From positions 1-64,000 of the forward strand of contig NIVC01000806.1 in NCBI GenBank assembly GCA_002269645.1: a DNA stretch of 64,000 nucleotides, in the 5' to 3' direction. The translations under genes were made by a program, and so were the position numbers. Positions 39,750-64,000 of the stretch are shown here, piece after piece. Under the pieces are notes generated by a model that had not been told where the DNA came from, did no database searches, and worked only from the letters and a program-made list of their open reading frames with translations. Origin of the DNA: Macrostomum lignano. Taxonomy: Eukaryota. Numbering within the stretch: the first letter of the stretch is position 1; each line of letters opens with the position of its first letter.

Positions 39750-40580
39750 ATGGCGTCGCAAGCAGCCAGTGAATTACCTCTCAATGATCCAGCCATGGCT
39801 GAGGCCTGGCTGCAAAGTTTTGAAGCACTGTGCAGGCACAAAAAACTGCGAGATACAAACGAAGAGAAGCAGGTGACAGACCTCTTCCTTGCTCGAGCAG
39901 GAATCAATGCAGTCCGATCCGTCTCTATCATGGCAAAGCCGAAAAACATTGAGGATATGACCTTCAAGGACATCAAGAAAATGATCATCGGGCGACTCCA
40001 GCCCAAAAAGAAACTGGTGATTGCAGAGCGCACAAGGTTCATGTCCCAGCGGCAGCTGTCAACAGAGTCGGCCCAGCAGTTCGCGGAGCGCTTGAGAGAC
40101 GCGGCAAAGCACTGTGAGTTTGACAAGCTCAACGAAAAAGACTGCAAACAGTCAGCCGAGGATGACTTGATCCAAACACTGCTGATCAGCGGCTTGTGCG
40201 ACCACAGCCAGCGGACTAAAACACTTGAGCACATTCAGAGCTCTGAGAATCCAGTGACTCTGGACACGTGTCTGCAGTACATCCAGCAGTTAGAGCTCAT
40301 CCAGAGCTACAGCTCAAGCGACCGATCTGCTGAAGCCCGAGAGCCTAGCAGAAGCTCCGAGACGGCTGAGAGTTCGACACCAGTTGCCAGCATCGACAGG
40401 AACCGCAATAGCGGTGCTCAGTGCAGGTCGTGTGGTCTGCAGCACCAGCCAGGCAAATGCCCTGCATTCGGGAAGACCTGTAACAAGTGCCACCGCAGGA
40501 ACCACTTTGCTGCAGTCTGCAGGAGCAGCGCCAAGTCCAAGTCGGTTGCACCTGCCCATGAAATCGACACGAGTGAGTGA
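39750..40580 (+). CDS. Gag of gypsy element 2
   Basis: 276 aa; ERTRFMSQRQ...FAERLRDAAKHCEF and CCHC knuckles (CRSCG..H..GKC; CNKCHRRNHFAAVC). Confidence 0.92.
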   Translation: MASQAASELPLNDPAMAEAWLQSFEALCRHKKLRDTNEEKQVTDLFLARAGINAVRSVSIMAKPKNIEDMTFKDIKKMIIGRLQPKKKLVIAERTRFMSQRQLSTESAQQFAERLRDAAKHCEFDKLNEKDCKQSAEDDLIQTLLISGLCDHSQRTKTLEHIQSSENPVTLDTCLQYIQQLELIQSYSSSDRSAEAREPSRSSETAESSTPVASIDRNRNSGAQCRSCGLQHQPGKCPAFGKTCNKCHRRNHFAAVCRSSAKSKSVAPAHEIDTSE

Positions 40581-43500
40581 GCAGGCAGGCATCTACACCA
40601 TCGTCGGCAACGAGAGCGGAAGCGGCAGCATAAAAACTGTGCTCATTGAAGGCAAGCCGTTCAAAATGCAGCTCGACTCTGGATCCGGTGCGAGCATCAT
40701 TCCGATAAACTTCTGGAGGAGCCTCGGTGAGCCCAAGCTACGAAAGTCCAAGCTGAGACTGCGACAATTTGACGGAACGGTCATCAGAACTAGAGGATGC
40801 TTCACGGCGCTCATCGAAGTCGGGAGACAAATCGCCTGTGCGGACGTGACGGTCACCGAATGCACAAAGGAGCACGGCCTCATCGGAACAGACGTGCTGG
40901 ACTTCAAGCTGGACACAGCGACTGTCAATCAAGTGGAGCGCAGCAGCAAACCGCTAGGCAAGCTCAAAGGTTTCCGTGCTCGGGTCCTGCTCAGGGAGAA
41001 CGCTCAGCCCAGCTTCTTCGATGCCCGGCCGCTCCCGATTCATCTCAAGCCGCTGGTGGTGGCTAAGCTGCGGACGATGATCGACGCCGGGATCCTCGAG
41101 CCCGTGCCGCCAGGCGGCAGCAGTTGGGCGTCGCCCATTGTGGTGGTGCGCAAGGCCGACGGAGACCTGAGAATCTGCTCCGACTACAAGGTCGGGGTGA
41201 ACCCGAAGATCTGCTCTGACGCCTACCCACTGCCCAACATCGAGCAAGCCTTCAGTGCCCTGGCAGGTATGAAGCACTTCGCAATTGTAGACTTAACAAA
41301 TGCCTACAACCAGATTGAGCTAGACGAGGCCTCCAGAGAAATACTCACCATCAACACGCCCCTAGGCCTGCTCAGATGGACGCGCATGCCATACGGGGTG
41401 AAGACGGCCAGTGCGCAGTTCCAGGCTGCCATGGAGGCAACGGTCGGCGGTGCGGTCAGCAACCTGGTGATCTACCAAGACGACATGTGCGTTGGCGCCA
41501 CCACAGCGGACGAATTGGACAGCAAAGTCCGGGACCTGCTGAGAGCGCTTTCTGATGCCGGCATGTCAATCAACGAAAAAAAGTGCGTTTTCCGCAGCAC
41601 GGAAATCAGTTTCCTTGGCTACCGCATCGCGGCTGACGGCGTGCGCCCTGATCGGAAGCTGGTGGAGAAAATCCTCGGCGTGAGCACCCCGGCGAGCAAA
41701 AAGGAACTCGAATCGTTTCTGGGAATGACGGTGTACTACTCGCGCTACATCAAGTCCTACTCGGAGAAGACCGAGCCGCTGACCGAGCTGCGGAGCAAGA
41801 AAGTCGCGTTCCATTGGGGACCTCGGCAGCAGAAAGCGTTTGACGAGCTCAAGCAGGCGCTTGCAGCTTCCCCAGTGGTCCGAATCTTCGATGCAAGAAA
41901 GCGCACAACTCTGACTACTGACGCCAGCGAAAAGGCCATAGCAGCAATCCTCTCTCAGGACGAGCACCCAGTGATGTACCTGTCAAGACGGCTGACACCG
42001 GCTGAGAGAAATTACTCGAATATCGAGCGGGAGGCCCTGGCTGTGGTGTGGGCCACTCAGAGAGCCAGACACTTTCTTCTCGGCAGCAAGTTTGTGCTCC
42101 AGTGCGATCATCAACCATTGGAGTTCATTTTTAGTCCGTCTCGGGAGCTTCCAAAGGTCACATCGGCTAGGATAATGCGCTGGGCGTTGCAGCTGTCGGC
42201 CTTCGACTACGAAATCTCGTACATCAAGGGCAGCTGCATCCCGCATGTCGACGCGCTGTCTCGAATTGAATTCAAGGAGGAAGGCGATGGAGACGACTGC
42301 CAGGAAAGCTTCGTTCACTGGACAGAGACGGAGGTGCTCAAGCTGGAGCAGATCAGAGACGCCACTGACAATGACCCGGTACTCGCCAGCGTCAAGCGCA
42401 GGATCCGCAGCAATGCGTGGAACAACTGCTCGGCAGCGGAGCGACCGTATAAAGCCGTCCGCCAGCAGCTCTCAGTGGAGAATGGCGTCGTCTGCCTGAG
42501 AGACCTGGTGGTCCCGCCTAGCCGGCTGCGGCAAGACGTGCTGCGAGCGGCTCACGGCGACTCGCACTGCGGTGCCCTAGCGACAAGAAATCGACTCAAG
42601 CTGGAAGCCTGGTGGCCGGGTCACTGCGAGGACGTCGAAAACTTCGTCAAGCAATGCCAGCGATGCGCGGAGATCCGTCCAATGCCTGCCAGAACGTGCC
42701 ACACCTGGCCGGCTGAAGATGGTCCCTGGAGACGTGTGCACATGGACCATGCTCACGTTCCCGGCTTCGGCCTGCTGCTCATTGTGGTGGACGCCTTCTC
42801 CGGCTGGCCGGAAGCGGTGCCTGTTGCCGACAAGAGCGCGACGACGGTCATCAAGGTACTCCGCCTGATTTTCTCCCGCCTGGGTGTGCCGCATACCTTG
42901 GTGGCGGACAATGCTCCGGAGTTCCGTGACCAGCAGCTGCACGAGTGGCTCAAGAAGATCGGCTGCTCGCCGATGCACTCGCCGCCGTATCATCCGCAGT
43001 CAAACGGGTGCGCCGAGCGCATGGTCCAGACCGTCAAGAAGGGGCTGCGGGCCTTCGCCGTGCACCAGGGCCGGTTCGACGCGTACCTCGCCAAGCTGCT
43101 GCTTAACTACCGGGCCACTCCGCGGGGCGACGGGCGTGGCAGTCCATCTGCGCTTATGGGGCGACAGCTGCGAAGTCCGCTGACCCTCCAATTCGACACC
43201 GATGCGCCGCTCGTCTACCGGTCGCGACCGGGGGGGCCGGCTGAGACCGTCCGCTTTGTGGTACAGGCCGGCCACAACACGGCCGTGGTCACCCGGGACA
43301 AGGATGACAGGCCTGTGCTGGCACACCGGGATCAGCTGCGCTTGCGTCCGAGTCCAAGCCGGGCGGAAGTTACGGACAACACTGACGACAGCGGCCGGGA
43401 CCCTGACGATGCCGGCCGGAGCCCTGACGACGGCGACCGGAACCCTGACGAAGGCGGCCGGAACCCTGACGAAGGCGGCCGGAACCCGGAACCTGATAGC

Positions 43501-43617
43501 CAGCGGCCAGACGCAGCGGCACCACCGCAGCAGGCCGCTGAAGCTACACCGGAGCCCCGACGAAGCTGCAGGTCGACCAAAGGGGTCGCCCCAGACCGAC
43601 TGTCTCCTCGTTGGTGA
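40384..43617 (+). CDS. Pol of gypsy element 2 (PR-RT-RNaseH-IN); the real coding part probably begins near 40580
   Basis: Protease QLDSGSGASII, RT WASPIVVV/CSDY/YQDD, RNase H TTDAS...EREAL...CDH, integrase H-C zinc motif and D-D-E (HMDH, ADNAPEF, NGCAERMVQ). Five 21-nt repeats (DDSGRDP-like) lie in the C-terminal tail. Confidence 0.95.
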   Translation: MPASTGTAIAVLSAGRVVCSTSQANALHSGRPVTSATAGTTLLQSAGAAPSPSRLHLPMKSTRVSEQAGIYTIVGNESGSGSIKTVLIEGKPFKMQLDSGSGASIIPINFWRSLGEPKLRKSKLRLRQFDGTVIRTRGCFTALIEVGRQIACADVTVTECTKEHGLIGTDVLDFKLDTATVNQVERSSKPLGKLKGFRARVLLRENAQPSFFDARPLPIHLKPLVVAKLRTMIDAGILEPVPPGGSSWASPIVVVRKADGDLRICSDYKVGVNPKICSDAYPLPNIEQAFSALAGMKHFAIVDLTNAYNQIELDEASREILTINTPLGLLRWTRMPYGVKTASAQFQAAMEATVGGAVSNLVIYQDDMCVGATTADELDSKVRDLLRALSDAGMSINEKKCVFRSTEISFLGYRIAADGVRPDRKLVEKILGVSTPASKKELESFLGMTVYYSRYIKSYSEKTEPLTELRSKKVAFHWGPRQQKAFDELKQALAASPVVRIFDARKRTTLTTDASEKAIAAILSQDEHPVMYLSRRLTPAERNYSNIEREALAVVWATQRARHFLLGSKFVLQCDHQPLEFIFSPSRELPKVTSARIMRWALQLSAFDYEISYIKGSCIPHVDALSRIEFKEEGDGDDCQESFVHWTETEVLKLEQIRDATDNDPVLASVKRRIRSNAWNNCSAAERPYKAVRQQLSVENGVVCLRDLVVPPSRLRQDVLRAAHGDSHCGALATRNRLKLEAWWPGHCEDVENFVKQCQRCAEIRPMPARTCHTWPAEDGPWRRVHMDHAHVPGFGLLLIVVDAFSGWPEAVPVADKSATTVIKVLRLIFSRLGVPHTLVADNAPEFRDQQLHEWLKKIGCSPMHSPPYHPQSNGCAERMVQTVKKGLRAFAVHQGRFDAYLAKLLLNYRATPRGDGRGSPSALMGRQLRSPLTLQFDTDAPLVYRSRPGGPAETVRFVVQAGHNTAVVTRDKDDRPVLAHRDQLRLRPSPSRAEVTDNTDDSGRDPDDAGRSPDDGDRNPDEGGRNPDEGGRNPEPDSQRPDAAAPPQQAAEATPEPRRSCRSTKGVAPDRLSPRW

Positions 43618-44480: not shown

Positions 44481-47400
44481 ATGCCATTGCTGTTAATTGT
44501 TAAGTCTGCAGAGGATCCCCTTGATGATCCCTATCTGCAGGTAACTTTTTGTCTTCCTCTGTCACCCTCTGCAATCCGTCAGTTTCTCCCTCTGTCACCA
44601 TCTGCCATCTCAGTTTCTCCCTCTGTCACCCTCTGCAATCTGTCAGTTTCTCCCTCTGTCACCATCTGCCATCTCAGTTTCTCACTCTGTCACCCTCTGC
44701 AATCTGTCAGTTTCTCCCTCTGTCACCCTCTGCAATCTGTCAGTTTCTCCCTCTGTCACCCTCTGCAATCTGTCAGTTTCTCTCTCTGTTACCCTCTGCA
44801 ATCTGTCAGTTTCTCCCTCTGTCACCCTCTGCAATCTGTCAGTTTCTCCCTCTGTCACCATCTGCAATCTGTCAGTTTCTCCCTCTGTCACCCTCTGCAA
44901 TCTGTCAGTTTCTCCCTCTGTCACCCTCTGCAATCTGTCAGTTTCTCTCTCTGTTACCCTCTGCAATCTGTCAGTTTCTCCCTCTGTTACCCTCTGCAAT
45001 CTGTCAGTTTCTCTCTCTGTTACCCTCTGCAATCTGTCAGTTTCTCCCTCTGTTACCCTCTGCAATCTGTCAGTTTCTCCCTCTGTCACCCTCTGCAATC
45101 TGTCAGTTTCTCCCTCTGTCACCCTCTGCAATCTGTCAGTTTCTCCCTCTGTCACCCTCTGCAATCTGTCAGTTTCTCCCTCTGTTACCCTCTGCAATCT
45201 GTCAGTTTCTCCCTCTGTCACCCTCTGCAATCTGTCAGTTTCTCCCTCTGTCACCCTCTGCAATCTGTCAGTTTCTCCCTCTGTCACCCTCTGCAATCTG
45301 TCAGTTTCTCCCTCTGTTACCCTCTGCAATCTGTCAGTTTCCGTTATTGCAATTTTACAAACAATTTGCTCTACCCATCAGGCTGTGCAGTCGAACTTCT
45401 CAACCTCCGAGTTCGAACCCGCCGTCCTCAGTCCGCACGAGTTCCTACCGTGCAAACGCAACGACAGCGACGAAACTTCCCGTGATGTCGTTGGCGACTC
45501 CTCAGAGGAGGATTCAAATCTAGCAGTCATTTTCACCAGCAAACGGGCCGTGCAGTTCTTTTCCGCTGTCTGCCGCAGCCCACGCCGCCTCTGCTACGCT
45601 GTGGGCCCTGCCACCGCCCAGGCTGCCGCCAGCGTTGCCGGCTTCGTAGAAGTTCGCGGCGGAGCCGCCTGCGGCAATGCTGACGCTCTGTGCGACTTGG
45701 TTGAGGCTGGTTGGTGCTGGACCTCAGTTGCTGGGCCAGCCTCCCAGATCCTCAGTTGCTGTGCCAGCCTCCCATATCCTCAGTTGCTGGGCCAGCCTCC
45801 CAGATCCTCAGTTGATGGGCCAGCCTCCCAGATCCTCAGTTGCTGGGCCAGCCTCCCATATCCTCAGTTGCTGGGCCAGCCTCCCAGATCCTCAGTTGAT
45901 GGGCCAGCCTCCCAGATCCTCAGTTGCTGGGCCAGCCTCCCAAATCCTCAGTTGCTGGGCCAGCCTCCCAGATCCTCAGTTGCTGGGCCAGCCTCCCAGA
46001 TCCTCAGTTGCTGGGCCAGCCTCCCAGATCCTCAGTCGCTGGGCCAGCCTCCCAGATCCTCAGTTGCTGGGCCAGCCTCCCAGAGTGTCAGTTGCTGGGC
46101 CAGCCTCCCAGAGTGTCAGTTGCTGGGCCAGCCTCCCAGATCCTCAGTTGCTGGGCCAGCCTCCCAGATCCTCAGTTGCTGGGCCAGCCTCCCAGATCCT
46201 CAGTCGCTGGGCCAGCCTCCCAGATCCTCAGTTGCTGGGCCAGCCTCCCAGAGTGTCAGTTGCTGGGCCAGCCTCCCAAATCCTCAGTTGCTGGGCCAGC
46301 CTCCCAGAGTGTCAGTTGCTGGGCCAGCCTCCCAGATCCTCAGTTGCTGGGCCAGCCTCCCAGATCCTCAGTTGCTGGGCCAGCCTCCCAGATCCCCAGT
46401 TGCTGGGCCAGCCTCCCAGAGTGTCAGTTGCTGGGCCAGCCTCCCAGAGTGTCAGTTGCTGGGCCAGCCTCCCAGATCCTCAGTTGCTGGGCCAGCCTCC
46501 CAGATCCTCAGTTGCTGGGCCAGCCTCCCAGATCCTCAGTTGCTGGGCCAGCCTCCCAGATCCCCAGTTGCTGGGCCAGCCTCCCAGAGTGTCAGTTGCT
46601 GGGCCAGCCTCCCAGAGTGTCAGTTGCTGGGCCAGCCTCCCAGATCCTCAGTTGCTGGGCCAGCCTCCCAGATCCTCAGTCGCTGGGCCAGCCTCCCAGA
46701 GTGTCAGTTGCTGGGCCAGCCTCCCAGAGTGTCAGTTGCTGGGCCAGCCTCCCAGAGTGTCAGTTGCTGGGCCAGCCTCCCAGATCCTCAGTTGCTGGGC
46801 CAGCCTCCCAGATCCTCAGTCGCTGGGCCAGCCTCCCAGAGTGTCAGTTGCTGGGCCAGCCTCCCAGAGTGTCAGTTGCTGGGCCAGCCTCCCAGAGTGT
46901 CAGTTGCTGGGCCAGCCTCCCAGAGTGTCAGTTGCTGGGCCAGCCTCCCAGAGTGTCAGTTGCTGGGCCAGCCTCCCAGATCCTCAGTCGCTGGGCCAGC
47001 CTCCCAGAGTGTCAGTTGCTGGGCCAGCCTCCCAGAGTGTCAGTTGCTGGGCCAGCCTCCCAAATCCTCAGTTGCTGGGCCAGCCTCCCAAATCCTCAGT
47101 TGCTGGGCCAGCCTCCCAAATCCTCAGTTGCTGGGCCAGCCTCCCAGAACTAAATCGTGGGTAATTTTGTGCCCATAAACCCAATCAAAGCAGTATGAAT
47201 AAAGTGCAATCTTTGCAGAGCTGCAACCTGAGGTTCACAAGCTGCTGTTTCCATGCGGCAGGGTGCGCAAGAGCACGGTGGAGACCCGTCTGGCCAGCTT
47301 CCGCCTCACAGTGATGGAGCTTTACGATGCTGTGGAGAAGAAAGATTTGGGCCGAGAAATCCAGCAAATTGTAAGTGCATTGAAACGCTTGACACTTGTT

Positions 47401-47891: not shown

Positions 47892-48406
47892 GGGGCTGTA
47901 GCCTAGTGGTCAGAGCGTCGGAATCACGACTGAAAGGTCACGGGTTCGATTCTCGACACACTTGAAGCTATTTGTGTCCTTGAGCAAGACTATGGACTTC
48001 TGCGGTATAAATTTAACATCGAACTGGTGCTGGCGCCCCTGGTTCTGGCACCCCTGGTGCTAAATCCCCTGGTGCTAAATCCCCTGGTGCTAAAGCCCCT
48101 GGTGCTAAAGCCCCTGGTGCTAAAGCCCCTGGTGCTAAAGCCCCTGGTGCTAAAGCCCCTGGTGCTAAAGCCCCTGGTGCTAAAGCCCCTGGTGCTAAAG
48201 CCCCTGGTGCTAAAGCCCCTGGTGCTAAAGCCCCTGGTGCTAAAGCCCCTGGTGCTAAAGCCCCTGGTGCTAAAGCCCCTGGTGCTAAAGCCCCAGTACC
48301 ACCAAAATAGTTTGAATGGTTCTATTATTTGGTAAATTTATATTTTAGAAGTCCCTGGTAAGAAAGACACCCCAACTCTGCATTGCTTCAGTTCACCCAG
48401 CTGGGG
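47892..48406 (+). mobile_element. tRNA-derived SINE (family A) interrupted by a 15-bp minisatellite
   Basis: Head GGGGCTGTAGCCTAGTGGTCAGAGCGTCGGAATCACGACTGAAAGGTCACGGGTTCGATTC matches the 850-917 copy. (CCCCTGGTGCTAAAG)n lies at 48025-48295 and the body resumes near 48370. Confidence 0.7.
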
Positions 48407-48703
48407 TAATTGATTGAGGGTTCAGATGCTGTTAAAATTACTAAATATTAATATTGTTTGTAAACATTATCCACGCCACTGAAAATACTGCATACGAGAA
48501 AAACGTCTTGAACATTTAGGATGGTAAATAAATCCTCTCTTACAAATGACCGTCAGTAATATAATTATGTTTTTATTTGATGCTTTTCAAGCATTGCAAT
48601 TGGCAATATAGAAAGTTAAGCCATTGTTTCTGTTGCAATAACTATAGGTAACTAAGGTCACGTTAGCTGCGTAGAACATGCATCAGCCGCTAGGACGTCA
48701 TCT

Positions 48704-49380
48704 TCAACCCCGCCAGGCATTCTCAGCCGGGGTCCCATAACAGGACGCCGGATGCATGAAGAAGTTCCGGCAGAGTTTCGAGCGTTTCATTGCCTGTCGA
48801 AGCTCCTGACTCTTCCAGTTGGCGCTGATGCCGGCAGGAATAGGTGGCGAATTTCTCCGATACTTCGCATAGGCCCGAGCAGGAGCCGGTATGAACTGGA
48901 ACTCGATGAAATTTGAAGTAGCAAACATTGAAGTCACTACTGATTAAACTATAATAAGAGCGACAAACGTGGAAAACTAAAGTAGAAGGACGCACTTTTA
49001 GCGACATTGTCACACAACCAGCGAGAGGCATTGCTGCCCATTCCGCCGACTCCCCCTGAGCAGGCACACAAGCGCGCGGATGCGTACGCAGTCATACGCA
49101 CAGGCATATGGCGTCAGGCATGTACCTATGTTGTCTTGGGGGTTGGCCCTCGAGGACGTTAATTGCACGAGCCGAGCCAAGCTTCTACCGATCTTTCTAT
49201 CTTCCCATTGTCGCTGTTGTGCCTCATACTTATTTGGCAGTGCTATAAAGGGTTGTTGTACGAGTAATACGGACTTACGATGCCGAACTTGCGATCTTCG
49301 GGCAGCGCCAGAGCTTCTTGGGCAGCCACCGCCAAGAGTCCAAGAGCAACCAGCACAAGTAGAGCAAATCTGCAACTCAT
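48704..49380 (-). CDS. Secreted neuropeptide precursor (97 aa) with a somatostatin/allatostatin-C-like disulfide peptide
   Basis: Exon 1, 49380-49279 (MSCRFALLVLVALGLLAVAAQEALALPEDRKFGI|GTAAGT), joins in phase 0 to exon 2, 48895-48704 (CAG|FIPAPARAYAKYRR...QAMKR-SKLCRNFFMHPASCYGTPAENAWRG*). Signal peptide, RR and KR dibasic sites and one Cys pair. Confidence 0.75.
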
Positions 49381-50699
49381 AATTCCTTTGAGAGTCTGGT
49401 TGCGCCGGAGAATGAGTCGCTGTGAACAAGTCATTTTTAGGGCAGAAGATTTGCCAATTTTTATAGATTTGAAAGATCAAAGGCGTCGGACCGCCCACGG
49501 AACTGCTGGGCCTCTGCTGTTTGCGGATTCCGATAAACTGGATTATTTTTCAGTTTTTTTGGAAACCTTCAAAAAATTCCTGACAATTCGTAACACAATG
49601 CTTTTGCGCAAATATGGAAGCAAAATTTCGGATCGGATGAAGATGAAATGCCCGTTTTGTTACATTGCATGCAGGATCTTTTGCTACAATATCGATTTTT
49701 TTATTCTGAGAGATTTGTCCAGGCTCAATTGATGATGGATTGGGTTGCTTGCGCAGAACCGTCTTTTGCGGGCTTGTAGCTAAGGTTAAGCAAGGGTTCT
49801 GGGGCGCTGTCCCAACCAGCTAGGAGGCAAAGAAGTCATGTCCTGTCGCTTATCCATATGCCTCTTGAGCAGGCACTCGCTCACACAGGGTTTACAGCGG
49901 CTCTGCCTTTCTAATCGTCAGGGCATGTACACTGTCGTGGCCCTCGTGAGCGAGAATCACATTTAAATACGAGCTCCATGGGTAGGCCAATATTCTTGTA
50001 CTCAAAATGGCTTGTTTCTTCACTTTATCTCTCGAGAAACTTCTGCAATCAGAGTTTGTAATGTATACCTACCGTCCTAATTAGTCACTGATCTCATAAT
50101 CTCGGATCGCAGGTTAAACACAGAAGCTGTTCACCAACACTTCCTACTAATAGTAGCATTTAATGTCCTTATGTACGATAGCGATCCTCGTGTAGCGATA
50201 AGAGTGGAGAGACAGACCCAAGAGCTGAGTAAAGAGTGGAGAGGCTGATTCAAGAGCTGAGTAAGGAGCGGAGAGTCATCCGAGAGCTGAGCAGGATTCA
50301 AATTTTGGTAGAAAAATTAGAACCATAAAGGGCATATTGCAAATTCGCAGTCAGACAGAATGCTCAGACTTCACACACTAAGCCTAAGGCTATAGACGTT
50401 CTCAGACTCTTGAATAGAATTGCTTGTCAGATTCGCCAACCTAAACTGTCCTGGGAAACAAAAACAATGAGGATGGCAAGACCATAAAGATATTCCTTAG
50501 GAGATGGAGACCCGCCGCTCCCCGTGAAATTCATTGAATTTTTTTAAGTTTCGAGTTTTAAATTAAAAACCTCACTGCAGACGGTAGTGTTTTACCCAAT
50601 TACTCAAGAAGACAGACTGCCAAGGTTTACTGAGGGAAATGCTGTGTCTCATGAGGGAATTTTTGAGATTAATGTGCAGGGGAATCGATTAGATATAAC

Positions 50700-52657: not shown

Positions 52658-55600
52658 ATGCGGCTTCTTCTGTTCGTTTCGGTCTTCATTCTGGCAGCTT
52701 CCGGCACCTCCGGGTCTGAGCTGGGTGAGTTTGAGATGCGCCTCATCTGAGCTGGGTGAGTTTGAGATGCGCCTCACCTGAGCTGGGTGAGTTTGAGATG
52801 CGCCTCATCTGAGCTGGGTGAGTTTTCATCTGAGCTGGGTGAGTTTTCATCTGAGCTGGGTGAGTTTGAGATGCGCCTTACCTGAGCTGGGTGAGTTTGA
52901 GATACGCCTCATCTGAGCTGGGTGAGTTTGAGATGCGCCTTACCTGAGCTGGGTGAGTTTGAGGTGCGCCTCACCTGAGCTGGGTGAGTTTGAGATGCGC
53001 CTTACCTGAGCTGGGTGAGTTTGAGGTGCGCCTTACCTTAGCTGGGTGAGTTTGAGATACGCCTGTGAGCTGCAACTATCTACATGCATGCTGAAACGAT
53101 CAGCTCAGCCGGCCTCTAAGACAGAAAATGCGATTTCACCAAGTCTTGATTTCCCTTGAGTGAGCTCTGCAGTAGCCGACCCACTAATTACTGTACATCA
53201 GGTTACATCAGGGTTAGGTTCGAGCCATGGCTTAAGATGAGTTGCTGAGCTGTCGAGACTCAGAAGTGGTGCTGTTACATGCATCTGAGGCTGGAAAGCT
53301 GGCTTTCAGGACTGGTGATTTTTTACTTTAACATATTTTTTAAGAATCTTTAAGATGGGACCAGGAGCTCTAGTGACTGTGCGAGTCTTTCTGTGTGAGT
53401 TCACGTTAGAACATTTGACGCAGGCAAATGGCTGCATGTCTCTGTTGCAGAGCACCCGAAATGTAAGTTCATCATCAATTCACCAATGTATAATATTGTC
53501 GTGCTATTGAAAGTGCAAACGCTTTACTCAACCTTTTGAATGTTTGGTTATTTACACTGGTGTTGGGACAATGGCAGAAACAGACCTCACGCTCACTCAT
53601 AAATTTACCCAATTAATGAGCGTCAGAGCACGAGCTCTGGCCGAACCCACTTTGAACTCTGAGCTGAAGATCGCGTCTTCGTTGGGATCGACCCGTCCCC
53701 AGGCACACACAATGCAGTACGAATCTCCTGCCCTCTAAGAAATAACGCAGCTCACTCAACATGCTCTTGGATTCCACGAGTCCGACAGGCAAGCGAGCGA
53801 CGGGCTTGGTTGCACGGAGCGCTGAGTAGTATCGTAGTTGACTGACTCAGCTGAGTGAGCTCTCGATCGTCTGAGTTTATCTGAGGATCTGAGTCTGAGT
53901 AGACTCTGTGCACCACCCACCATCCATGCCATCAAGCTCGACACACAAATCATATAAATATTGTGCACTGTTTCATCCTATTTCACCCTTGGGTGCACCG
54001 ACCCCGACTACAACTGACTGGCGACTGTAGCGCCCTTCCACTTTACTTGTCCCTGAGTTTGAGCATGAGCAGTTCGCTTTCTTATTCGATTTTGTTTAAT
54101 TATACGAATTTAAATTTCAGTAAACTGAAAGGTTGCTACTATGAGGGCACTAGCGCATATAATTTGGAACGTCCTGTGTTTGTCATCAGCGAGTCAATGA
54201 CAATTGATAGCTGTCAGAAAAGCTGCAATCTCACTACTAATCCCTACTTTGGAGTAGCAAGAGGAACAGAATGCTTCTGTGGCAAAAAGACAGCTCATAT
54301 GAAAAGGTATCTACACTATTGTCATAGGAGATGTCCGGGAAACCCAACGCAGATCTGCGGTGGTAAAGACTCGATGATTGTGTACGAGCAGCCCGCTGCA
54401 CTCGTTAAAACCTCTATTGGTGAGAATATTATAATTAATGTTAATGTCTGGAGTGTACGATGGATAGATCCACTCTTGATCGTGCACGTGCAGAGCGATT
54501 TCAATTCGTCAGTTGCTTGTTTTAATTTACGCGTGTCTACTTTTTGTAGAAAGCATAGCTTCAAAAAGTTGAATACCTCAAAAATACCTCCACGAATTAG
54601 ATATAGGAACCATCCATCCACCATCCAGGAAGCATCTACCAAAAGCAAACCGACATAGTTGTTGGAGAGCCAACAGAGAATGCAACAAAAGATCGAACAA
54701 AAAACATGTAGCTTCTGACCTCTGAGTCTTGACATCTCAGCAATTTCTTTGTAAGCCTTGAAATCTTAGCGATCCCCCTAAAAGCATTGACATCTGCGCA
54801 ATTCCACTCTTGACACCTCAGCGATTCCTCCCGTAAGCCTCGACTTTCCAGCAATTCCCCCAGGATGGATGGATGGATGGATGGATGGATGGATGGATGG
54901 ATGGATGGATGGATCAATGGTTGAAAGTGATAGTAAACTGCAGCCGACAGTCAAATTGTGGCAGTCTATTGCAGCTGACAGTCAAATCAAACAAATTGTA
55001 ATTTCACCAAGACTTGAGCACTGTACTGAGCTCAGTAGCCGACCTGCTATTGACATGTATGATAATTCTGAAATACCTATTATCCATTTTAAATTTCACC
55101 CCAAGTAACTTGCTGTCTCTTGTTGCAGAGCACCCGAAATGTAAGTTAATCATCAATCTACCAATGTATGATTATAATTTCCTTCATGGTATTTAAAGTG
55201 CAAACTCTTTACTCAACCTTTTGAATTTTTAATAAATTTAAACTTGTGTGCGACAATGGCAGAAACAGACCTCACTGTCACTCATAAATTTACCCAATTA
55301 ATGAGCGTCAGAGCAAGAGCTCAAGGTACCTTCGGTCCTCTGGCCGGACCCACTTCGAACTCTGAGCGGAAGATCGCGTATTCGTTGGAATCGACCCGTC
55401 CCCAGGCAGACACAATACAGTACGAATCTCCAGCCCTCTAAGAAATAACGCAGCTCACTCAACATGCTCTTGGATTCCACGAGTCCGACAGGCGAGCGAC
55501 AGGGCTTGGTTGCACGGAGCGCTGAGTAGTATCGTAGTTGACTGACTCAGCTGAGTGAGCTCTCTATCGTCTGAGTTTATCTGAGTATCTGAGTCTGAGT

Positions 55601-56164: not shown

Positions 56165-59100
56165 AGAGCTGATGAAAAACCAGTCAAGCTGATGAAAAAC
56201 CAGTCAAGCTGATAAAAAACCAGTCAAGCTGATGAAAAACCAATCAAGCTGATGAAAAACCAGTCAAGCTGATGAAAAACCAGTCAAGCTGATGAAAAAC
56301 CAGTCAAGCTGATGAAAAACCAGTCAAGCTGATGAAAAACCAGTCAAGCTGATGAAAAACCAATCAAGCTGATGAAAAACCAGTCAAGCTGATGAAAAAC
56401 CAGTCAAGCTGATGAAAAACCAGTCAAGCTGATGAAAAACCAGTCAAGCTGATGAAAAACCAATCAAGCTGATGAAGAGCCAATCAAGCTGATAAAAAGC
56501 CAGTCAAGCTGATGAAAAGTCAATCAAGCTAATAAAAAGCCAGTCAAGCTGATGAAAAGCCAATCAATCTGATAAAAAGCCATTCAAGCTGATGAAGAGC
56601 CAATCAAGCTGATAAAAAGCCAGTCAAGCTGATGAAAAGTCAATCAAGCTGATAAAAAGTCTTTCAAGCTGATGAAAAGCCAATCAAGCTGATAAAAAGC
56701 CATTCAAGCTGATAAAAAGCCAATCAAGCTGATAAAAAGCCAGTCAAGCTGATGAAAAGCCAATCAAGCTGATAAAAGCCAATCAAGCTGATAAAAAGCC
56801 AATCAAGCTGATAAAAAGCCATTCAAGCTAATAAAAAGTCTTTCAAGCTGATGAAGAGCCAATCAAGCTGATAAAAAGCCATTCAAGCTGATGAAGAGCC
56901 AATCAAGCTGATAAAAAGCCAGTCAAGCTGATGAAAAGCCAATCAAGCTGATGAAAAGCCAATCAAGCTGATGAAGAGCCAATCAAGCTGATGAAAAGCC
57001 AATCAAGCTGATGAAGAGCCAATCAAGCTGATAAAAAGTCTTTCAAGCTGATGAAGAGCCACTCAAGCTGATAAAAAGCCATTCAAGCTGATGAAGAGCC
57101 AATCAAGCTGATAAAAAGCCAGTCAAGCTGATGAAGAGCCAATCAAGCTGATAAAAAGTCTTTCAAGCTGATGAAGAGCCAATCAAGCTGATAAAAAGCC
57201 ATTCAAGCTGATGAAGAGCCAATCAAGCTGATAAAAGTTTTTCAAGCTGATGAAGAGCCAATCAAGCTGATAAAAAGCCATTCAAGCTGATGAAGAGCCA
57301 ATCAAGCTGATAAAAAGCCAGTCAAGCTGATGAAAAGCCAATCAAGCTGATAAAAAGCCAGTCAAGCTGATGAAAAGCCAATCAATCTGATAAAAAGCCA
57401 TTCAAGCTGATGAAGAGCCAATCAAGCTGATAAAAAGCCAGTCAAGCTGATGAAAAACCAGTCAAGCTGATAAAAAACCAGTCAAGCTGATGAAAAACCA
57501 GTCAAGCTGATGAAAAACCAGTCAAGCTGATGAAAAACCAGTCAAGCTGATGAAAAACCAGTCAAGCTGATGAAAAACCAGTCAAGCTGATGAAAAACCA
57601 ATCAAGCTGATGAAAAACCAATCAAGCTGATGAAAAGCCAATCAGGCTGATGAAAAGCCAATCAAGCTGATAAAAAGCCATTCAAGCTGATGAAGAGCCA
57701 ATCAAGCTGATAAAAGTCTTTCAAGCTGATGAAGAGCCAATCAAGCTGATAAAAAGCCAGTCAAGCTGATGAAAAGCCAATCAAGCTGATAAAAAGCCAG
57801 TCAAGCTGATGAAAAGCCAATCAATCTGATAAAAAGCCATTCAAGCTGATGAAGAGCCAATCAAGCTGATAAAAAGCCAGTCAAGCTGATGAAAAACCAG
57901 TCAAGCTGATGAAAAACCAGTCAAGCTGATGAAAAACCAGTCAAGCTGATGAAAAACCAATCAAGCTGATGAAAAACCAGTCAAGCTGATGAAAAACCAG
58001 TCAAGCTGATGAAAAACCAGTCAAGCTGATGAAAAACCAGTCAAGCTGATGAAAAACCAGTCAAGCTGATGAAAAACCAGTCAAGCTGATGAAAAACCAG
58101 TCAAGCTGATGAAAAACCAATCAAGCTGATGAAAAACCAATCAAGCTGATGAAAAACCAGTCAAGCTGATGAAAAACCAGTCAAGCTGATGAAAAACCAA
58201 TCAAGCTGATGAAAAACCAGTCAAGCTGATGAAAAACCAGTCAAGCTGATGAAAAACCAGTCAAGCTGATGAAAAGCCAATCAAGCTGATGAAAAGCCAG
58301 TCAAGCTGATGAAAAGCCAATCAAGCTAAAAAAAAGTCTTTCAAGCTGATGAAAAGCCAATCAAGCTGATAAAAAGCCATTCAAGCTGATAAAAAGCCAA
58401 TCAAGCTGATAAAAAGCCAGTAAAGCTGATGAAAAGCCAATCAAGCTGATAAAAAGCCAGTCAAGCTGATGAAAAGCCAATCAATCTGATAAAAAGCCAT
58501 TCAAGCTGATGAAGAGCCAATCAAGCTGATAAAAAGCCAGTCAAGCTGATGAAAAGTCAATCAAGCTGATAAAAAGTCTTTCAAGCTGATGAAAAGCCAA
58601 TCAAGCTGATAAAAAGCCATTCAAGCTGATAAAAAGCCAATCAAGCTGATAAAAAGCCAGTCAAGCTGATGAAAAGCCAATCAAGCTGATGAAAAGCCAA
58701 TCAAGCTGATAAAAAGCCAATCAAGCTGATAAAAAGCCAGTCAAGCTGATGAAAAGTCAATCAAGCTGATAAAAAGTCTTTCAAGCTGATGAAAAGCCAA
58801 TCAAGCTGATAAAAAGCCATTCAAGCTGATAAAAAGCCAATCAAGCTGATAAAAAGCCAGTCAAGCTGATGAAAAGCCAATCAAGCTGATGAAAAGCCAG
58901 TCAAGCTGATGAAAAGCCAATCAAGCTGATGAAAAGCCAATCAAGCTGATGAAAAACCAGTCAAGCTGATGAAAAACCAGTCAAGCTGATGAAAAACCAG
59001 TCAAGCTGATGAAAAACCAGTCAAGCTGATGAAAAACCAGTCAAGCTGATGAAAAACCAATCAAGCTGATGAAAAACCAGTCAAGCTGATGAAAAACCAG

Positions 59101-62100
59101 TCAAGCTGATGAAAAACCAGTCAAGCTGATGAAAAACCAGTCAAGCTGATGAAAAACCAATCAAGCTGATGAAGAGCCAATCAAGCTGATAAAAAGCCAG
59201 TCAAGCTGATGAAAAGTCAATCAAGCTAATAAAAAGCCAGTCAAGCTGATGAAAAGCCAATCAATCTGATAAAAAGCCATTCAAGCTGATGAAGAGCCAA
59301 TCAAGCTGATAAAAAGCCAGTCAAGCTGATGAAAAGTCAATCAAGCTGATAAAAAGTCTTTCAAGCTGATGAAAAGCCAATCAAGCTGATAAAAAGCCAT
59401 TCAAGCTGATAAAAAGCCAATCAAGCTGATAAAAAGCCAGTCAAGCTGATGAAGAGCCAATCAAGCTGATAAAAAGCCATTCAAGCTGATGAAGAGCCAA
59501 TCAAGCTGATAAAAGTTTTTCAAGCTGATGAAGAGCCAATCAAGCTGATAAAAAGCCATTCAAGCTGATGAAGAGCCAATCAAGCTGATAAAAAGCCAGT
59601 CAAGCTGATGAAAAGCCAATCAAGCTGATAAAAAGCCAGTCAAGCTGATGAAAAGCCAATCAATCTGATAAAAAGCCATTCAAGCTGATGAAGAGCCAAT
59701 CAAGCTGATAAAAAGCCAGTCAAGCTGATGAAAAACCAGTCAAGCTGATAAAAAACCAGTCAAGCTGATGAAAAACCAGTCAAGCTGATGAAAAACCAGT
59801 CAAGCTGATGAAAAACCAGTCAAGCTGATGAAAAACCAGTCAAGCTGATGAAAAACCAGTCAAGCTGATGAAAAACCAATCAAGCTGATGAAAAACCAAT
59901 CAAGCTGATGAAAAGCCAATCAGCTGATGAAAAGCCAATCAAGCTGATAAAAAGCCATTCAAGCTGATGAAGAGCCAATCAAGCTGATAAAAGTCTTTCA
60001 AGCTGATGAAGAGCCAATCAAGCTGATAAAAAGCCAGTCAAGCTGATGAAAAGCCAATCAAGCTGATAAAAAGCCAGTCAAGCTGATGAAAAGCCAATCA
60101 ATCTGATAAAAAGCCATTCAAGCTGATGAAGAGCCAATCAAGCTGATAAAAAGCCAGTCAAGCTGATGAAAAACCAGTCAAGCTGATGAAAAACCAGTCA
60201 AGCTGATGAAAAACCAGTCAAGCTGATGAAAAACCAATCAAGCTGATGAAAAACCAGTCAAGCTGATGAAAAACCAGTCAAGCTGATGAAAAACCAGTCA
60301 AGCTGATGAAAAACCAGTCAAGCTGATGAAAAACCAGTCAAGCTGATGAAAAACCAGTCAAGCTGATGAAAAACCAGTCAAGCTGATGAAAAACCAATCA
60401 AGCTGATGAAAAACCAATCAAGCTGATGAAAAACCAGTCAAGCTGATGAAAAACCAGTCAAGCTGATGAAAAACCAATCAAGCTGATGAAAAACCAGTCA
60501 AGCTGATGAAAAACCAGTCAAGCTGATGAAAAACCAGTCAAGCTGATGAAAAGCCAATCAAGCTGATGAAAAGCCAGTCAAGCTGATGAAAAGCCAATCA
60601 AGCTAAAAAAAAGTCTTTCAAGCTGATGAAAAGCCAATCAAGCTGATAAAAAGCCATTCAAGCTGATAAAAAGCCAATCAAGCTGATAAAAAGCCAGTAA
60701 AGCTGATGAAAAGCCAATCAAGCTGATAAAAAGCCAGTCAAGCTGATGAAAAGCCAATCAATCTGATAAAAAGCCATTCAAGCTGATGAAGAGCCAATCA
60801 AGCTGATAAAAAGCCAGTCAAGCTGATGAAAAGTCAATCAAGCTGATAAAAAGTCTTTCAAGCTGATGAAAAGCCAATCAAGCTGATAAAAAGCCATTCA
60901 AGCTGATAAAAAGCCAATCAAGCTGATAAAAAGCCAGTCAAGCTGATGAAAAGCCAATCAAGCTGATGAAAAGCCAATCAAGCTGATAAAAAGCCAATCA
61001 AGCTGATAAAAAGCCAGTCAAGCTGATGAAAAGTCAATCAAGCTGATAAAAAGTCTTTCAAGCTGATGAAAAGCCAATCAAGCTGATAAAAAGCCATTCA
61101 AGCTGATAAAAAGCCAATCAAGCTGATAAAAAGCCAGTCAAGCTGATGAAAAGCCAATCAAGCTGATGAAAAGCCAGTCAAGCTGATGAAAAGCCAATCA
61201 AGCTGATGAAAAGCCAATCAAGCTGATGAAAAACCAGTCAAGCTGATGAAAAACCAGTCAAGCTGATGAAAAACCAGTCAAGCTGATGAAAAACCAGTCA
61301 AGCTGATGAAAAACCAGTCAAGCTGATGAAAAACCAATCAAGCTGATGAAAAACCAGTCAAGCTGATGAAAAACCAGTCAAGCTGATGAAAAACCAGTCA
61401 AGCTGATGAAAAACCAGTCAAGCTGATGAAAAACCAATCAAGCTGATGAAGAGCCAATCAAGCTGATAAAAAGCCAGTCAAGCTGATGAAAAGTCAATCA
61501 AGCTAATAAAAAGCCAGTCAAGCTGATAAAAAGCCATTCAAGCTGATGAAGAGCCAATCAAGCTGATAAAAAGCCAGTCAAGCTGATGAAAAGCCAATCA
61601 AGCTGATGAAAAGCCAATCAAGCTGGTGAAGAGCCAATCAAGCTGATAAAAAGCCATTCAAGCTGATGAAGAGCCAATCAAGCTGATGAAAAGCCAATCA
61701 AGCTGATGAAGAGCCAATCAAGCTGATAAAAAGCCATTCAAGCTGATGAAGAGCCAATCAAGCTGATAAAAGTCTTTCAAGCTGATGAAGAGCCAATCAA
61801 GCTGATAAAAAGCCATTTAAGCTGATGAAGAGCCAATCAAGCTGATAAAAAGCCAGTCAAGCTGATGAAAAGCCAATCAAGCTGATAAAAAGCCAGTCAA
61901 GCTGATGAAAAGCCAATCAAGCTGATAAAAAGCCATTCAAGCTGATGAAGAGCCAATCAAGCTGATAAAAAGCCAGTCAAGCTGATGAAAAGCCAATCAA
62001 GCTGATGAAAAACCAGTCAAGCTGATGAAAAACCAGTCAAGCTGATGAAAAACCAGTCAAGCTGATGAAAAACCAGTCAAGCTGATGAAAAACCAGTCAA

Positions 62101-64000
62101 GCTGATGAAAAACCAATCAAGCTGATGAAAAGCCAATCAAGCTGATAAAAAGCCAATCAAGCTGATAAAAAGCCAGTCAAGCTGATGAAAAGCCAATCAA
62201 GCTGATAAAAAGTCTTTCAAGCTGATGAAAAGCCAATCAAGCTGATAAAAAGCCATTCAAGCTGATGAAAAGCCAATCAAGCTGATAAAAAGCCAGTCAA
62301 GCTGATGAAAAGCCAATCAAGCTGATGAAAAGCCAGTCAAGCTGATGAAAAGCCAATCAAGCTGATGAAAAGCCAATCAAGCTGATGAAAACCAGTCAAG
62401 CTGATGAAAAACCAGTCAAGCTGATGAAAAACCAGTCAAGCTGATGAAAAACCAGTCAAGCTGATGAAAAACCAGTCAAGCTGATGAAAAACCAATCAAG
62501 CTGATGAAAAACCAGTCAAGCTGATGAAAAACCAGTCAAGCTGATGAAAAACCAGTCAAGCTGATGAAAAACCAGTCAAGCTGATGAAAAACCAATCAAG
62601 CTGATGAAGAGCCAATCAAGCTGATAAAAAGCCAGTCAAGCTGATGAAAAGCCAATCAAGCTGATGAAAAGCCAATCAAGCTGATAAAAAGCCAATCAAG
62701 CTGATAAAAAGCCATTCAAGCTAATAAAAAGTCTTTCAAGCTGATGAAGAGCCAATCAAGCTGATAAAAAGCCATTCAAGCTGATGAAGAGCCAATCAAG
62801 CTGATAAAAAGCCAGTCAAGCTGATGAAAAGCCAATCAAGCTGATAAAAAGCCATCAAGCTGATGAAGAGCCAATCAAGCTGATGAAAAGCCAATCAAGC
62901 TGATGAAGAGCCAATCAAGCTGATAAAAAGCCATTCAAGCTGATGAAGAGCCAATCAAGCTGAAAAAGTCTTTCAAGCTGATGAAGAGCCAATCAAGCTG
63001 ATAAAAAGCCATTTCAAGCTGATGAAGAGCCAATCAAGCTGATAAAAAGCCAGTCAAGCTGATGAAAAGCCAATCAAGCTGATAAAAAGCCAGTCAAGCT
63101 GATGAAAAGCCAATCAAGCTGATAAAAAGCCATTCAAGCTGATGAAGAGCCAATCAAGCTGATAAAAAGCCAGTCAAGCTGATGAAAAACAAGTCAAGCT
63201 GATGAAAAACCAGTCAAGCTGATGAAAAACCAGTCAAGCTGATGAAAAACCAGTCAAGCTGATGAAAAACCAGTCAAGCTGATGAAAAACCAGTCAAGCT
63301 GATGAAAAACCAATCAAGCTGATGAAAAACCAGTCAAGCTGATGAAAAACCAGTCAAGCTGATGAAAAACCAATCAAGCTGATGAAAAACCAGTCAAGCT
63401 GATGAAAAGCCAATCAAGCTGATAAAAGCCAATCAAGCTGATGAAAAGCCAATCAAGCTGATAAAAAGCCAATCAAGCTAATAAAAAGTCTTTCAAGCTG
63501 ATGAAGAGCCAATCAAGCTGATAAAAAGCCATTCAAGCTGATGAAGAGCCAATCAAGCTGATAAAAAGCCAGTCAAGCTGATGAAAGCCAATCAAGCTGA
63601 TAAAAAGCCAATCAAGCTGATGAAGAGCCAATCAAGCTGATGAAAAGCCAATCAAGCTGATGAAGAGCCAATCAAGCTGATAAAAAGCCATTCAAGCTGA
63701 TGAAGAGCCAATCAAGCTGATAAAAAGCCATTCAAGCTGATGAAGAGCCAATCAAGCTGATAAAAAGCCATTCAAGCTGATGAAGAGCCAATCAAGCTGA
63801 TAAAAAGCCATTCAAGCTGATGAAGAGCCAATCAAGCTGATAAAAAGCCATCAAGCTGATGAAAAGCCAATCAAGCTGATAAAAAGCCATTCAAGCTGAT
63901 GAAGAGCCAATCAAGCTGATAAAAAGTCTTTCAAGCTGATGAAGAGCCAATCAAGCTGATAAAAAGCCATTCAAGCTGATGAAGAGCCAATCAAGCTGAT
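56165..64000. repeat. Large 20-bp satellite with higher-order structure, running off the window end
   Basis: (GCTGATGAAAAACCAGTCAA)n and variants (GATAAAAAGCCATTCAA, GAAGAGCCAATCAA, AAAAAGTCTTTCAA); about 390 monomers. Confidence 0.98.

Follow-up and report, generated by a model that had tools for sequence, protein, structure and literature searches.

We report a two-exon gene on the minus strand of a 64,000-nucleotide (nt) stretch of Macrostomum lignano DNA (assembly GCA_002269645.1, contig NIVC01000806.1, positions 1 to 64,000 of the forward strand; called the window below), whose exons were read from the sequence and joined in silico to give a product of 97 amino acids (aa). The product is probably a small secreted prohormone-like precursor with a putative disulfide and a putative amide, and the gene is interpreted here as the orphan precursor of a cyclic (disulfide-ring), amidated neuropeptide or hormone, a reading to which we give a probability of about 0.55. 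That the locus holds a real gene for a secreted precursor is very likely, an overall judgement which was made apart from the figures for the single readings. The peptide is placed in no named family because each of them has one or more tested defining features that it does not show, and its partial likenesses to somatostatin (SS), to allatostatin-C (AstC), to elevenin and to EP/CCHamide, as far as can be read from the residues, miss those positions that are conserved across phyla.

Gene structure and encoded precursor

The gene had been proposed in a sequence-only reading of the window, and its two minus-strand pieces, with the donor at 49278 and the acceptor at 48896, were reproduced exactly and give the 97-aa product. 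The signal peptide, the RK, RR and KR sites, the peptide following AMKR, the 9-residue ring and the terminal Gly which that reading had listed are all in the sequence, and its guess of a flatworm source was right. The intron has GT..AG consensus sites, joins the two reading frames in phase and leaves the signal peptide on an exon of its own, and the promoter and poly(A) signals stand at sensible distances (Table 1). The ring peptide can be reached only through this splice, because the unspliced frame of exon 1 meets a stop after 11 further codons. The intron falls 9 residues past the predicted signal cleavage and the ring peptide begins 47 residues past the signal peptide.

The start codon was considered separately, as the public model of this gene begins at an upstream in-frame ATG and is 115 aa long. 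With the TATA box just 26 nt upstream, this ATG (49434) stands roughly at the place where transcription would begin; it probably coincides with the transcription start or precedes it and is hence probably not a real start codon, so that the 97-aa form is probably the real one and the 115-aa start is probably wrong. An AG near 49416, which follows a pyrimidine-rich run (ttgttcacag), is a possible spliced-leader acceptor, and its use would remove ATG 49434.

Hydropathy is 2.1-3.1 across residues 1-21 of the product. The signal cleavage was placed between Ala25 and Leu26 by the -3/-1 rule and the processing sites were likewise judged by rule. A structure model built from the single sequence, which is weak evidence, has only one confident element, a signal helix of residues 3-24 with a predicted local distance difference test score (pLDDT) of about 85; a further short helix is modelled at residues 62-70, just ahead of the KR site, and the remainder is of low confidence, as would be expected of a propeptide and not of a folded domain. 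The generic features of a neuropeptide precursor are present, namely a signal peptide, dibasic sites, an amidation Gly and no folded domain. The loop between Cys76 and Cys86 has 9 residues (RNFFMHPAS), and after the second cysteine comes an 11-residue tail, which is made of a Tyr directly after the cysteine and 10 more residues and ends in Gly97, the last codon before the stop and a candidate amide donor.

A dibasic site followed by a Cys loop of 4-12 residues and a Gly-stop was found in 2 cases in the six-frame translation of the 64-kb window, and 19 cases were found when the Gly was not required. The locus is convincing because a signal-peptide exon is joined in frame by consensus splice sites and is accompanied by promoter and poly(A) signals and by independent public models with the same junction. 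A tandem or second copy was searched for in the 64-kb window with tblastn and blastn and none was found, the only match being a dispersed repeat in the intron. The overlapping and antisense open reading frames (ORFs) at the locus gave no family match above its cut-off, and no competing coding explanation was found on either strand.

Public records and homologue searches

A search of 5.8 billion protein clusters (word-indexed, E <= 10) returned a single cluster, which belongs to Macrostomum lignano. One of its members, entered in UniProt as A0A1I8IT71 under the name 'Uncharacterized protein' and 115 aa long, agrees without a difference with the window reading from ATG 49434, the GI|FI junction at the splice included. 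The cluster representative, UniProt A0A1I8H222 (98 aa), is a second gene copy which is 97% identical and has the same GI|FI junction. It differs from the window product in 3 places, which are an L8V exchange within the signal peptide and, in the proregion, an additional His and an R->W change, and from residue 44 onward, ring peptide included, it is unchanged; the ORF, the signal peptide, the 3 dibasic sites, the 2 cysteines and the terminal Gly are all kept. The gene is already in public annotation though uncharacterised, so that the description of it as hidden has to be withdrawn, the product being A0A1I8IT71 and its paralogue A0A1I8H222 also being on record. It is true that the ORF list misses the gene, but this holds for the list of unspliced ORFs only, as the public annotation has it.

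The same 5.8 billion protein clusters yielded no homologue from beyond M. lignano at E <= 10, and no Pfam family, Somatostatin included, matched the 97-aa product at E <= 10. When the proregion and peptide were compared by phmmer with 1.84 billion representative proteins, only A0A1I8H222 and one protein of Phytophthora capsici (KAG1684570.1, 714 aa, with repeats of about 83 residues) were returned. The latter matched the proregion with E = 2e-8 and was rejected as a chance match, because seven repeated weak proregion matches (34-42% over about 33 residues) add up and inflate the E-value; the case illustrates how repeats inflate the whole-sequence E-values of HMMER. The peptide string was not found in the literature searched, and none of its motifs is present in the planarian prohormone supplements. 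On present data the peptide appears to be an orphan restricted to the M. lignano lineage.

Proposed processing

In the proposed mechanism the signal peptide would be removed after Ala25 (A-L-A|L), and prohormone convertases would then cut at R30K31, R47R48 and K71R72, the last of which stands in an R-x-x-x-K-R context. The C-terminal fragment SKLCRNFFMHPASCYGTPAENAWRG would be oxidised to form the Cys76-Cys86 disulfide with its 9-residue ring, and Gly97 would be converted to an amide, giving SKLCRNFFMHPASCYGTPAENAWR-NH2, a 24-residue cyclic Arg-amide. This product may be released in a regulated manner from neurosecretory or endocrine cells and may act on a G-protein-coupled receptor. The same precursor could also yield FGIFIPAPARAYAKY and NSPPIPAGISANWKSQELRQAM, of which FGIFIPAPARAYAKY differs between the gene copies.

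Similarity to ring-peptide families

The peptide was aligned locally with 15 reference peptides, and the scores were compared with a null of 5,000 shuffles in which the cysteines were kept fixed. The reference sequences included those of cortistatin, UII, MCH, CCAP, CCHamide-2 and vasopressin, and that of Platynereis elevenin was verified. Platynereis elevenin was the best of the 15 (score 40, p = 0.0004, family-wise 0.004), and it was followed by cortistatin-17 (score 35, p = 0.005), Drosophila AstC (score 29, p = 0.007), Aplysia elevenin (score 30, p = 0.010) and SS-14 (score 31, p = 0.010). The scores of ArSS1, ArSS2, Capitella SSRPL1, UII, MCH, EP, CCAP and vasopressin were at chance, with p = 0.60 for the Capitella SSRP-like peptide and p = 0.39 for Aplysia EP. 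All these shuffle p-values concern a locus which was picked for its likeness to somatostatin, and they are uncorrected for that choice.

Family profiles were also scored. Local alignments with profile hidden Markov models (HMMs) break at the insertion or deletion that changes the ring size and their scores stay near zero, and for this reason Cys-anchored position-specific scoring matrices (PSSMs) were added, in which each ring half is scored from its own cysteine so that differences in ring size are tolerated. For elevenin the HMM score was -0.1 bits (p = 0.20) and the PSSM score -22.4 bits, where the lowest true member has 24.3; for all AstC peptides they were 2.3 bits (p = 0.035) and -8.7 bits, where the lowest true member has 20.7. 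The PSSM of lophotrochozoan AstC gave -14.4 bits (p = 0.14; lowest true member 22.6). For SS the HMM gave 4.7 bits (p = 0.03) and the PSSM +4.3 bits (p = 0.003 with Cys-fixed shuffles; lowest true member 26.5), in a profile which was built from 4 peptides, 3 of them vertebrate, and the positive part of this score comes from C-R-N-F-F and S-C only. Judged by these scores the order of the residues looks more like that of a neuropeptide than its shuffled versions do, with a signal that is spread over three unrelated families and lies far below the level of their members.

Alternative explanations and value of the finding

Several points weigh against a cyclic, amidated neuropeptide or hormone. 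By chance, the tail pattern alone should turn up roughly once in every 64 kb. Only 3 positions differ between the gene copies, and a changeless C-terminal half would arise by chance in about 9% of cases by our estimate. The UniProt models are unreviewed automatic predictions, and the precursor is known here from the sequence of one species alone; the searched collections sample small flatworm precursors poorly, and conservation across species and selection on the Cys pair are hypothetical. Numerous lineage-specific secreted proteins of M. lignano serve purposes outside the nervous system, and a non-signalling role is therefore conceivable. The similarity to elevenin (p = 0.0004) and to cortistatin (p = 0.005) exceeds the shuffled controls, and on this account the placement in no family may be too cautious. 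A non-neural secreted product (gland, seminal-fluid, adhesive or antimicrobial), in which the dibasic sites and the terminal Gly are incidental, is nevertheless rather unlikely: three well-placed dibasic sites, R-x-x-x-K-R immediately ahead of a peptide with two cysteines and a Gly-stop end, no folded domain and an above-shuffle similarity to several ring neuropeptides speak against it, and they have to be balanced with the chance occurrence of the tail pattern in the window and with the finding of no homologue outside the species in the searched collections, which is typical of fast-evolving secreted proteins. It is highly improbable that the locus is non-functional, whether as two ORFs that pair by chance or as a duplicate in decay, caught by automatic annotation. 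It does lie amid retrotransposon and satellite DNA with a dispersed repeat in its intron, and the UniProt entries are predictions that have not been reviewed, but both copies keep an intact ORF, signal peptide, splice junction, cleavage sites and cysteines, and the promoter, splice and poly(A) signals are of consensus form and sensibly spaced.

Two further explanations would place the peptide in a known family. That it is a divergent member of the SS/AstC superfamily, serving in flatworms as the ligand of SS/AstC-type receptors and having a ring of intermediate size (9 residues), is quite unlikely. C-R-N-F-F and S-C match SS-14 and cortistatin-17 (pairwise 31-35, p = 0.005-0.01; anchored SS profile +4.3 bits), but F-M-H replaces the F-W-K core, the score is far under that of the lowest member (26.5 bits) in a profile of only 4 peptides, 3 of them vertebrate, and Pfam Somatostatin gives no match at E <= 10. 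The ring holds an Asn and P-A-S-C-Y is like the arthropod P-I-S-C-F, but these matches are arthropod-specific on the AstC side as the others are vertebrate-specific on the SS side, and the lophotrochozoan profile falls to -14.4 bits. The size of SS-type rings varies from 10 to 15 and SSRP-like peptides likewise have a C-terminal Pro and a single Trp, but the ring of protostome AstC is always 6 and the tail here runs 11 residues past Cys2. The C-terminal location of the peptide after KR, the single proregion intron, of phase 0, and the SSTR2-like receptors of the planarian Schmidtea (one neighbour-joining study, with no flatworm ligand reported) are in agreement with such a member. That the peptide is of elevenin (L11) type and has diverged by the gain of a ring residue and by a shift to the C-terminal end of its precursor is very unlikely, although elevenin gives the best of the 15 pairwise scores (40, p = 0.0004, family-wise 0.004), shares H-P, S-C, the Gly at +2 and C-x-G-T-x-A, and has some long-tailed members; 9 ring residues in place of 8, C-Y-G, the Leu before Cys1, the C-terminal position, the one phase-0 intron, an HMM score of -0.1 bits and a PSSM score of -22.4 against at least 24.3 for members tell against it.

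It is unlikely that a receptor of SS/AstC type or elevenin type has in this peptide its missing ligand in flatworms. Such a pairing is conceivable and can be tested, because SSTR2-like receptors are reported for planarian Schmidtea, in one neighbour-joining analysis only, and flatworm ligands are unreported, no SS-, AstC- or elevenin-type ligand being listed for flatworms in the reviews and surveys. If the pairing is true, ring size and the 'defining' core motifs would be far more plastic in Platyhelminthes than elsewhere, the system would be extended to Platyhelminthes and the disputed relationship of somatostatin and allatostatin-C would have a new anchor. If there is no such pairing, the peptide would be one more lineage-specific orphan, which is ordinary. 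Few links connect the neuropeptide repertoires of flatworms with those of the rest of the animals, and the candidate is a synthesisable 24-residue peptide of a genetically tractable flatworm which can be assayed on the orphan receptors of the species.

Coordinates and neighbourhood of the locus

Table 1. Features of the peptide gene and its product, with positions in the window
Feature	Position	Strand	Description
TATAAA	49465..49460	-	80 nt upstream of ATG 49380, 26 nt upstream of ATG 49434; pattern scan, putative promoter element
Upstream in-frame ATG	49432..49434	-	start of public 115-aa model (MTCSQRLILRRNQTLKGI + 97 aa)
Coding exon 1	49380..49279	-	34 codons from ATG 49380, encodes MSCRFALLVLVALGLLAVAAQEALALPEDRKFGI
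Signal peptide	49306..49380	-	residues 1-25: n-region MSCR, hydrophobic core FALLVLVALGLLAVAA, A-L-A before predicted cleavage
Splice donor GTAAGT	49278..49273	-	from sequence
Intron	48896..49278	-	383 nt, GTAAGT...TTCCAG, phase 0 (between codons 34 and 35), inside proregion
Splice acceptor CAG (TTCCAG end)	48896	-	from sequence
Coding exon 2	48895..48704	-	63 codons plus TGA, encodes FIPAPARAYAKYRRNSPPIPAGISANWKSQELRQAMKRSKLCRNFFMHPASCYGTPAENAWRG-stop
Dibasic sites			R30K31, R47R48, K71R72; pattern scan of product
K71-R72 convertase site	48782..48787	-	Arg at -6 (RQAMKR), directly before ring peptide; predicted cleavage
Peptide S73-G97	48781..48707	-	SKLCRNFFMHPASCYGTPAENAWRG-stop after AMKR; equal to SKLCRNFFMHPASCYGTPAENAWR-Gly
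Cys76	48772..48770	-	first ring cysteine
Cys86	48742..48740	-	second ring cysteine
TGA stop	48706..48704	-	from sequence
AATAAA polyadenylation signal	48577..48572	-	127 nt past stop codon; pattern scan

The surroundings of the gene are rich in repeats. An ORF of 1077 aa at 40384..43617 (+) belongs to a long terminal repeat (LTR) retrotransposon of Ty3/gypsy type and carries domains of an aspartyl protease, a reverse transcriptase, an RNase H and an integrase, apparently uninterrupted. A 7.8-kb satellite occupies 56167..64000 with a 20-bp unit AGCTGATGAAAAGCCAATCA in about 392 copies at 90% match; its AT skew is strong, at about 0.45, and it runs off the end of the window. Minisatellites were found at 44552..45341 (33-bp unit), 45722..47148 (28-bp), 48024..48294 (15-bp) and 52716..53064 (31/62-bp), and translation of the 15-bp one in a mechanical ORF at 48027..48335, just downstream of the peptide gene, gives PLVLK repeats. 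The dispersed repeat in the intron (49044..49182) matches 30494..30672 on the opposite strand about 18 kb off, in stretches of 63 and 42 bp which are 90-94% identical. The ORFs at 53963..54658 (+), with a WSC domain (E = 6e-16), and at 19197..19829 (+), with a TLC or ceramide-synthase-type domain (E = 1e-28), are probably exons of neighbouring genes.

Comparison with known systems

Other ring peptides were set aside. MCH, urotensin II, CCAP and vasopressin were rejected as their pairwise scores are at chance, and calcitonin-type peptides were rejected on their layout. EP/CCHamide peptides have a ring of 5-8 residues, a GG[N/H]-amide end and a location directly after the signal peptide, and they were rejected on pairwise scores at chance level, that with Aplysia EP among them, and on the different layout.

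Across phyla the somatostatin group is marked by a disulfide loop with the motif [F/Y/aliphatic]-W-K (Koch et al. 2022, PMC9048919). The W-K core is the only motif common to chordate SS, echinoderm SS2, UII and protostome SSRP-like peptides, and the loops have 10-15 residues in SS, cortistatin (CST) and SS2 and 4 in UII, URP and SSRP-like peptides. The W-K motif is absent from the loop RNFFMHPAS, which has F-M-H at the matching position where ArSS2 (RAKNARCMADFWKGRGLVDC) carries FWK, and a loop of 9 residues fits neither size class. With vertebrate SS-14 and cortistatin-17 the peptide shares the ring start C-[K/R]-N-F-F and the ring end S-C, and like vertebrate SS and CST it is the C-terminal peptide of a small precursor, follows basic residues and comes from a gene whose proregion holds one phase-0 intron. 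It differs from SS-14 in having F-M-H-P in place of the F-W-K-T pharmacophore and a ring of 9 instead of 10-15 residues, and whereas SS ends at Cys2 it has an 11-residue tail with a probable amide. The C-R-N-F-F likeness is confined to the half-ring of vertebrate SS and cortistatin and does not take in the residues kept in echinoderm SS2 or SSRP-like peptides; orthology with somatostatin is doubted because a distant orthologue is expected to share the deeply conserved FWK and not a vertebrate-specific flank.

A C-terminal peptide together with a phase-0 proregion intron is reported for all SS/AstC-type genes (Koch et al.) and is seen in SS/CST, echinoderm SS2 and spiralian AstC genes, and the position of the peptide (73-97 of 97) and the phase of the intron match this layout. 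According to the same source these families cannot be told apart by the structure of their genes, and what the sequence suggests is the general precursor layout of SS/AstC with membership unproven. Whether SS and AstC are orthologues or paralogues is itself an open dispute in the literature.

The loops of protostome AstC always have 6 residues (16/16 listed AstC peptides comply), and the motifs of the family are an Asn in the loop, FxP in many members and an aromatic residue after Cys2 which ends the peptide. Lophotrochozoan AstC peptides are of the CLVNIVSCW and CMFNVVACY types, which have no Pro, with the consensus C-[LM]-[VF]-N-[IVL]-[VI]-[AS]-C-[WYF]. The peptide shares with AstC (arthropod QVRYRQCYFNPISCF) a ring after KR at the C-terminus of the precursor and an Asn in the ring, with arthropod AstC the P-x-S-C-aromatic end, where P-A-S-C-Y resembles P-I-S-C-F, and with spiralian AstC genes the phase-0 intron that lies within the proregion. 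As the lophotrochozoan members are without proline, the P-x-S-C-aromatic match is with the arthropod variant only. The differences are a ring of 9 against the 6 that is invariant in protostomes, a peptide which runs 10 residues beyond the aromatic residue where AstC ends one residue past Cys2, an Asn at loop position 2 against position 3, and F-M-H-P, which is FxxP against FxP. The protostome SSRP-like peptides (Capitella QASSGAQICIWKVCPPTPW) have in common with it a C-terminal extension with Pro and a single Trp (C-PPTPW versus C-YGTPAENAW); their 4-residue ring and obligatory W-K are both absent here, and their genes are split into three exons by introns of phase 0 and phase 1, against two exons and one phase-0 intron. 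To the sequence-only reading the peptide had looked like a somatostatin/allatostatin-C hybrid, a membership which is not supported, as there is no FWK, the loop has 9 residues, Pfam gives no match and the profile scores are far below those of members. Its remark that the peptide starts like SST and ends like AstC is correct in so far as C-R-N-F-F, S-C and P-x-S-C-aromatic are present, but these are vertebrate- and arthropod-specific matches only.

Elevenin had not been considered in that reading, and it gives the best pairwise score of the 15 references, yet the features that define the family are not those of the peptide. In all of the listed elevenins (44/44) the ring is of exactly 8 residues and is followed by C-[R/L]-G, and Asp/Asn usually precedes Cys1; the Gly two residues past Cys2 is the most conserved and the most function-critical residue, and in Aplysia elevenin (RPRIDCTRFVFAPACRGVSA) a change of the post-Cys2 Arg to Ala raises the half-maximal effective concentration (EC50) 5- to >1000-fold. 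The elevenin peptide stands directly after the signal peptide in its precursor, and the Lautoconus elevenin gene has three exons and two phase-2 introns. The peptide here has 9 ring residues against 8, lies far C-terminal in its precursor and comes from a gene with one phase-0 intron against two of phase 2, and it has Tyr after Cys2 (C-Y-G) in place of Arg (rarely Leu) and Leu before Cys1 in place of Asp/Asn. In the best alignment, Platynereis PDCTRFVFHPSCRGVAA is set against CRNFFMHPASCYGTPA of the peptide, and the positions which agree are an Arg or Thr following Cys1, a Phe as third ring residue, H-P, S-C, and Gly at +2 and Ala at +5 after Cys2, with a single disulfide in each. Some elevenins also have long C-terminal tails, and with the ant elevenins (CRGTQA) the peptide shares C-x-G-T-x-A.

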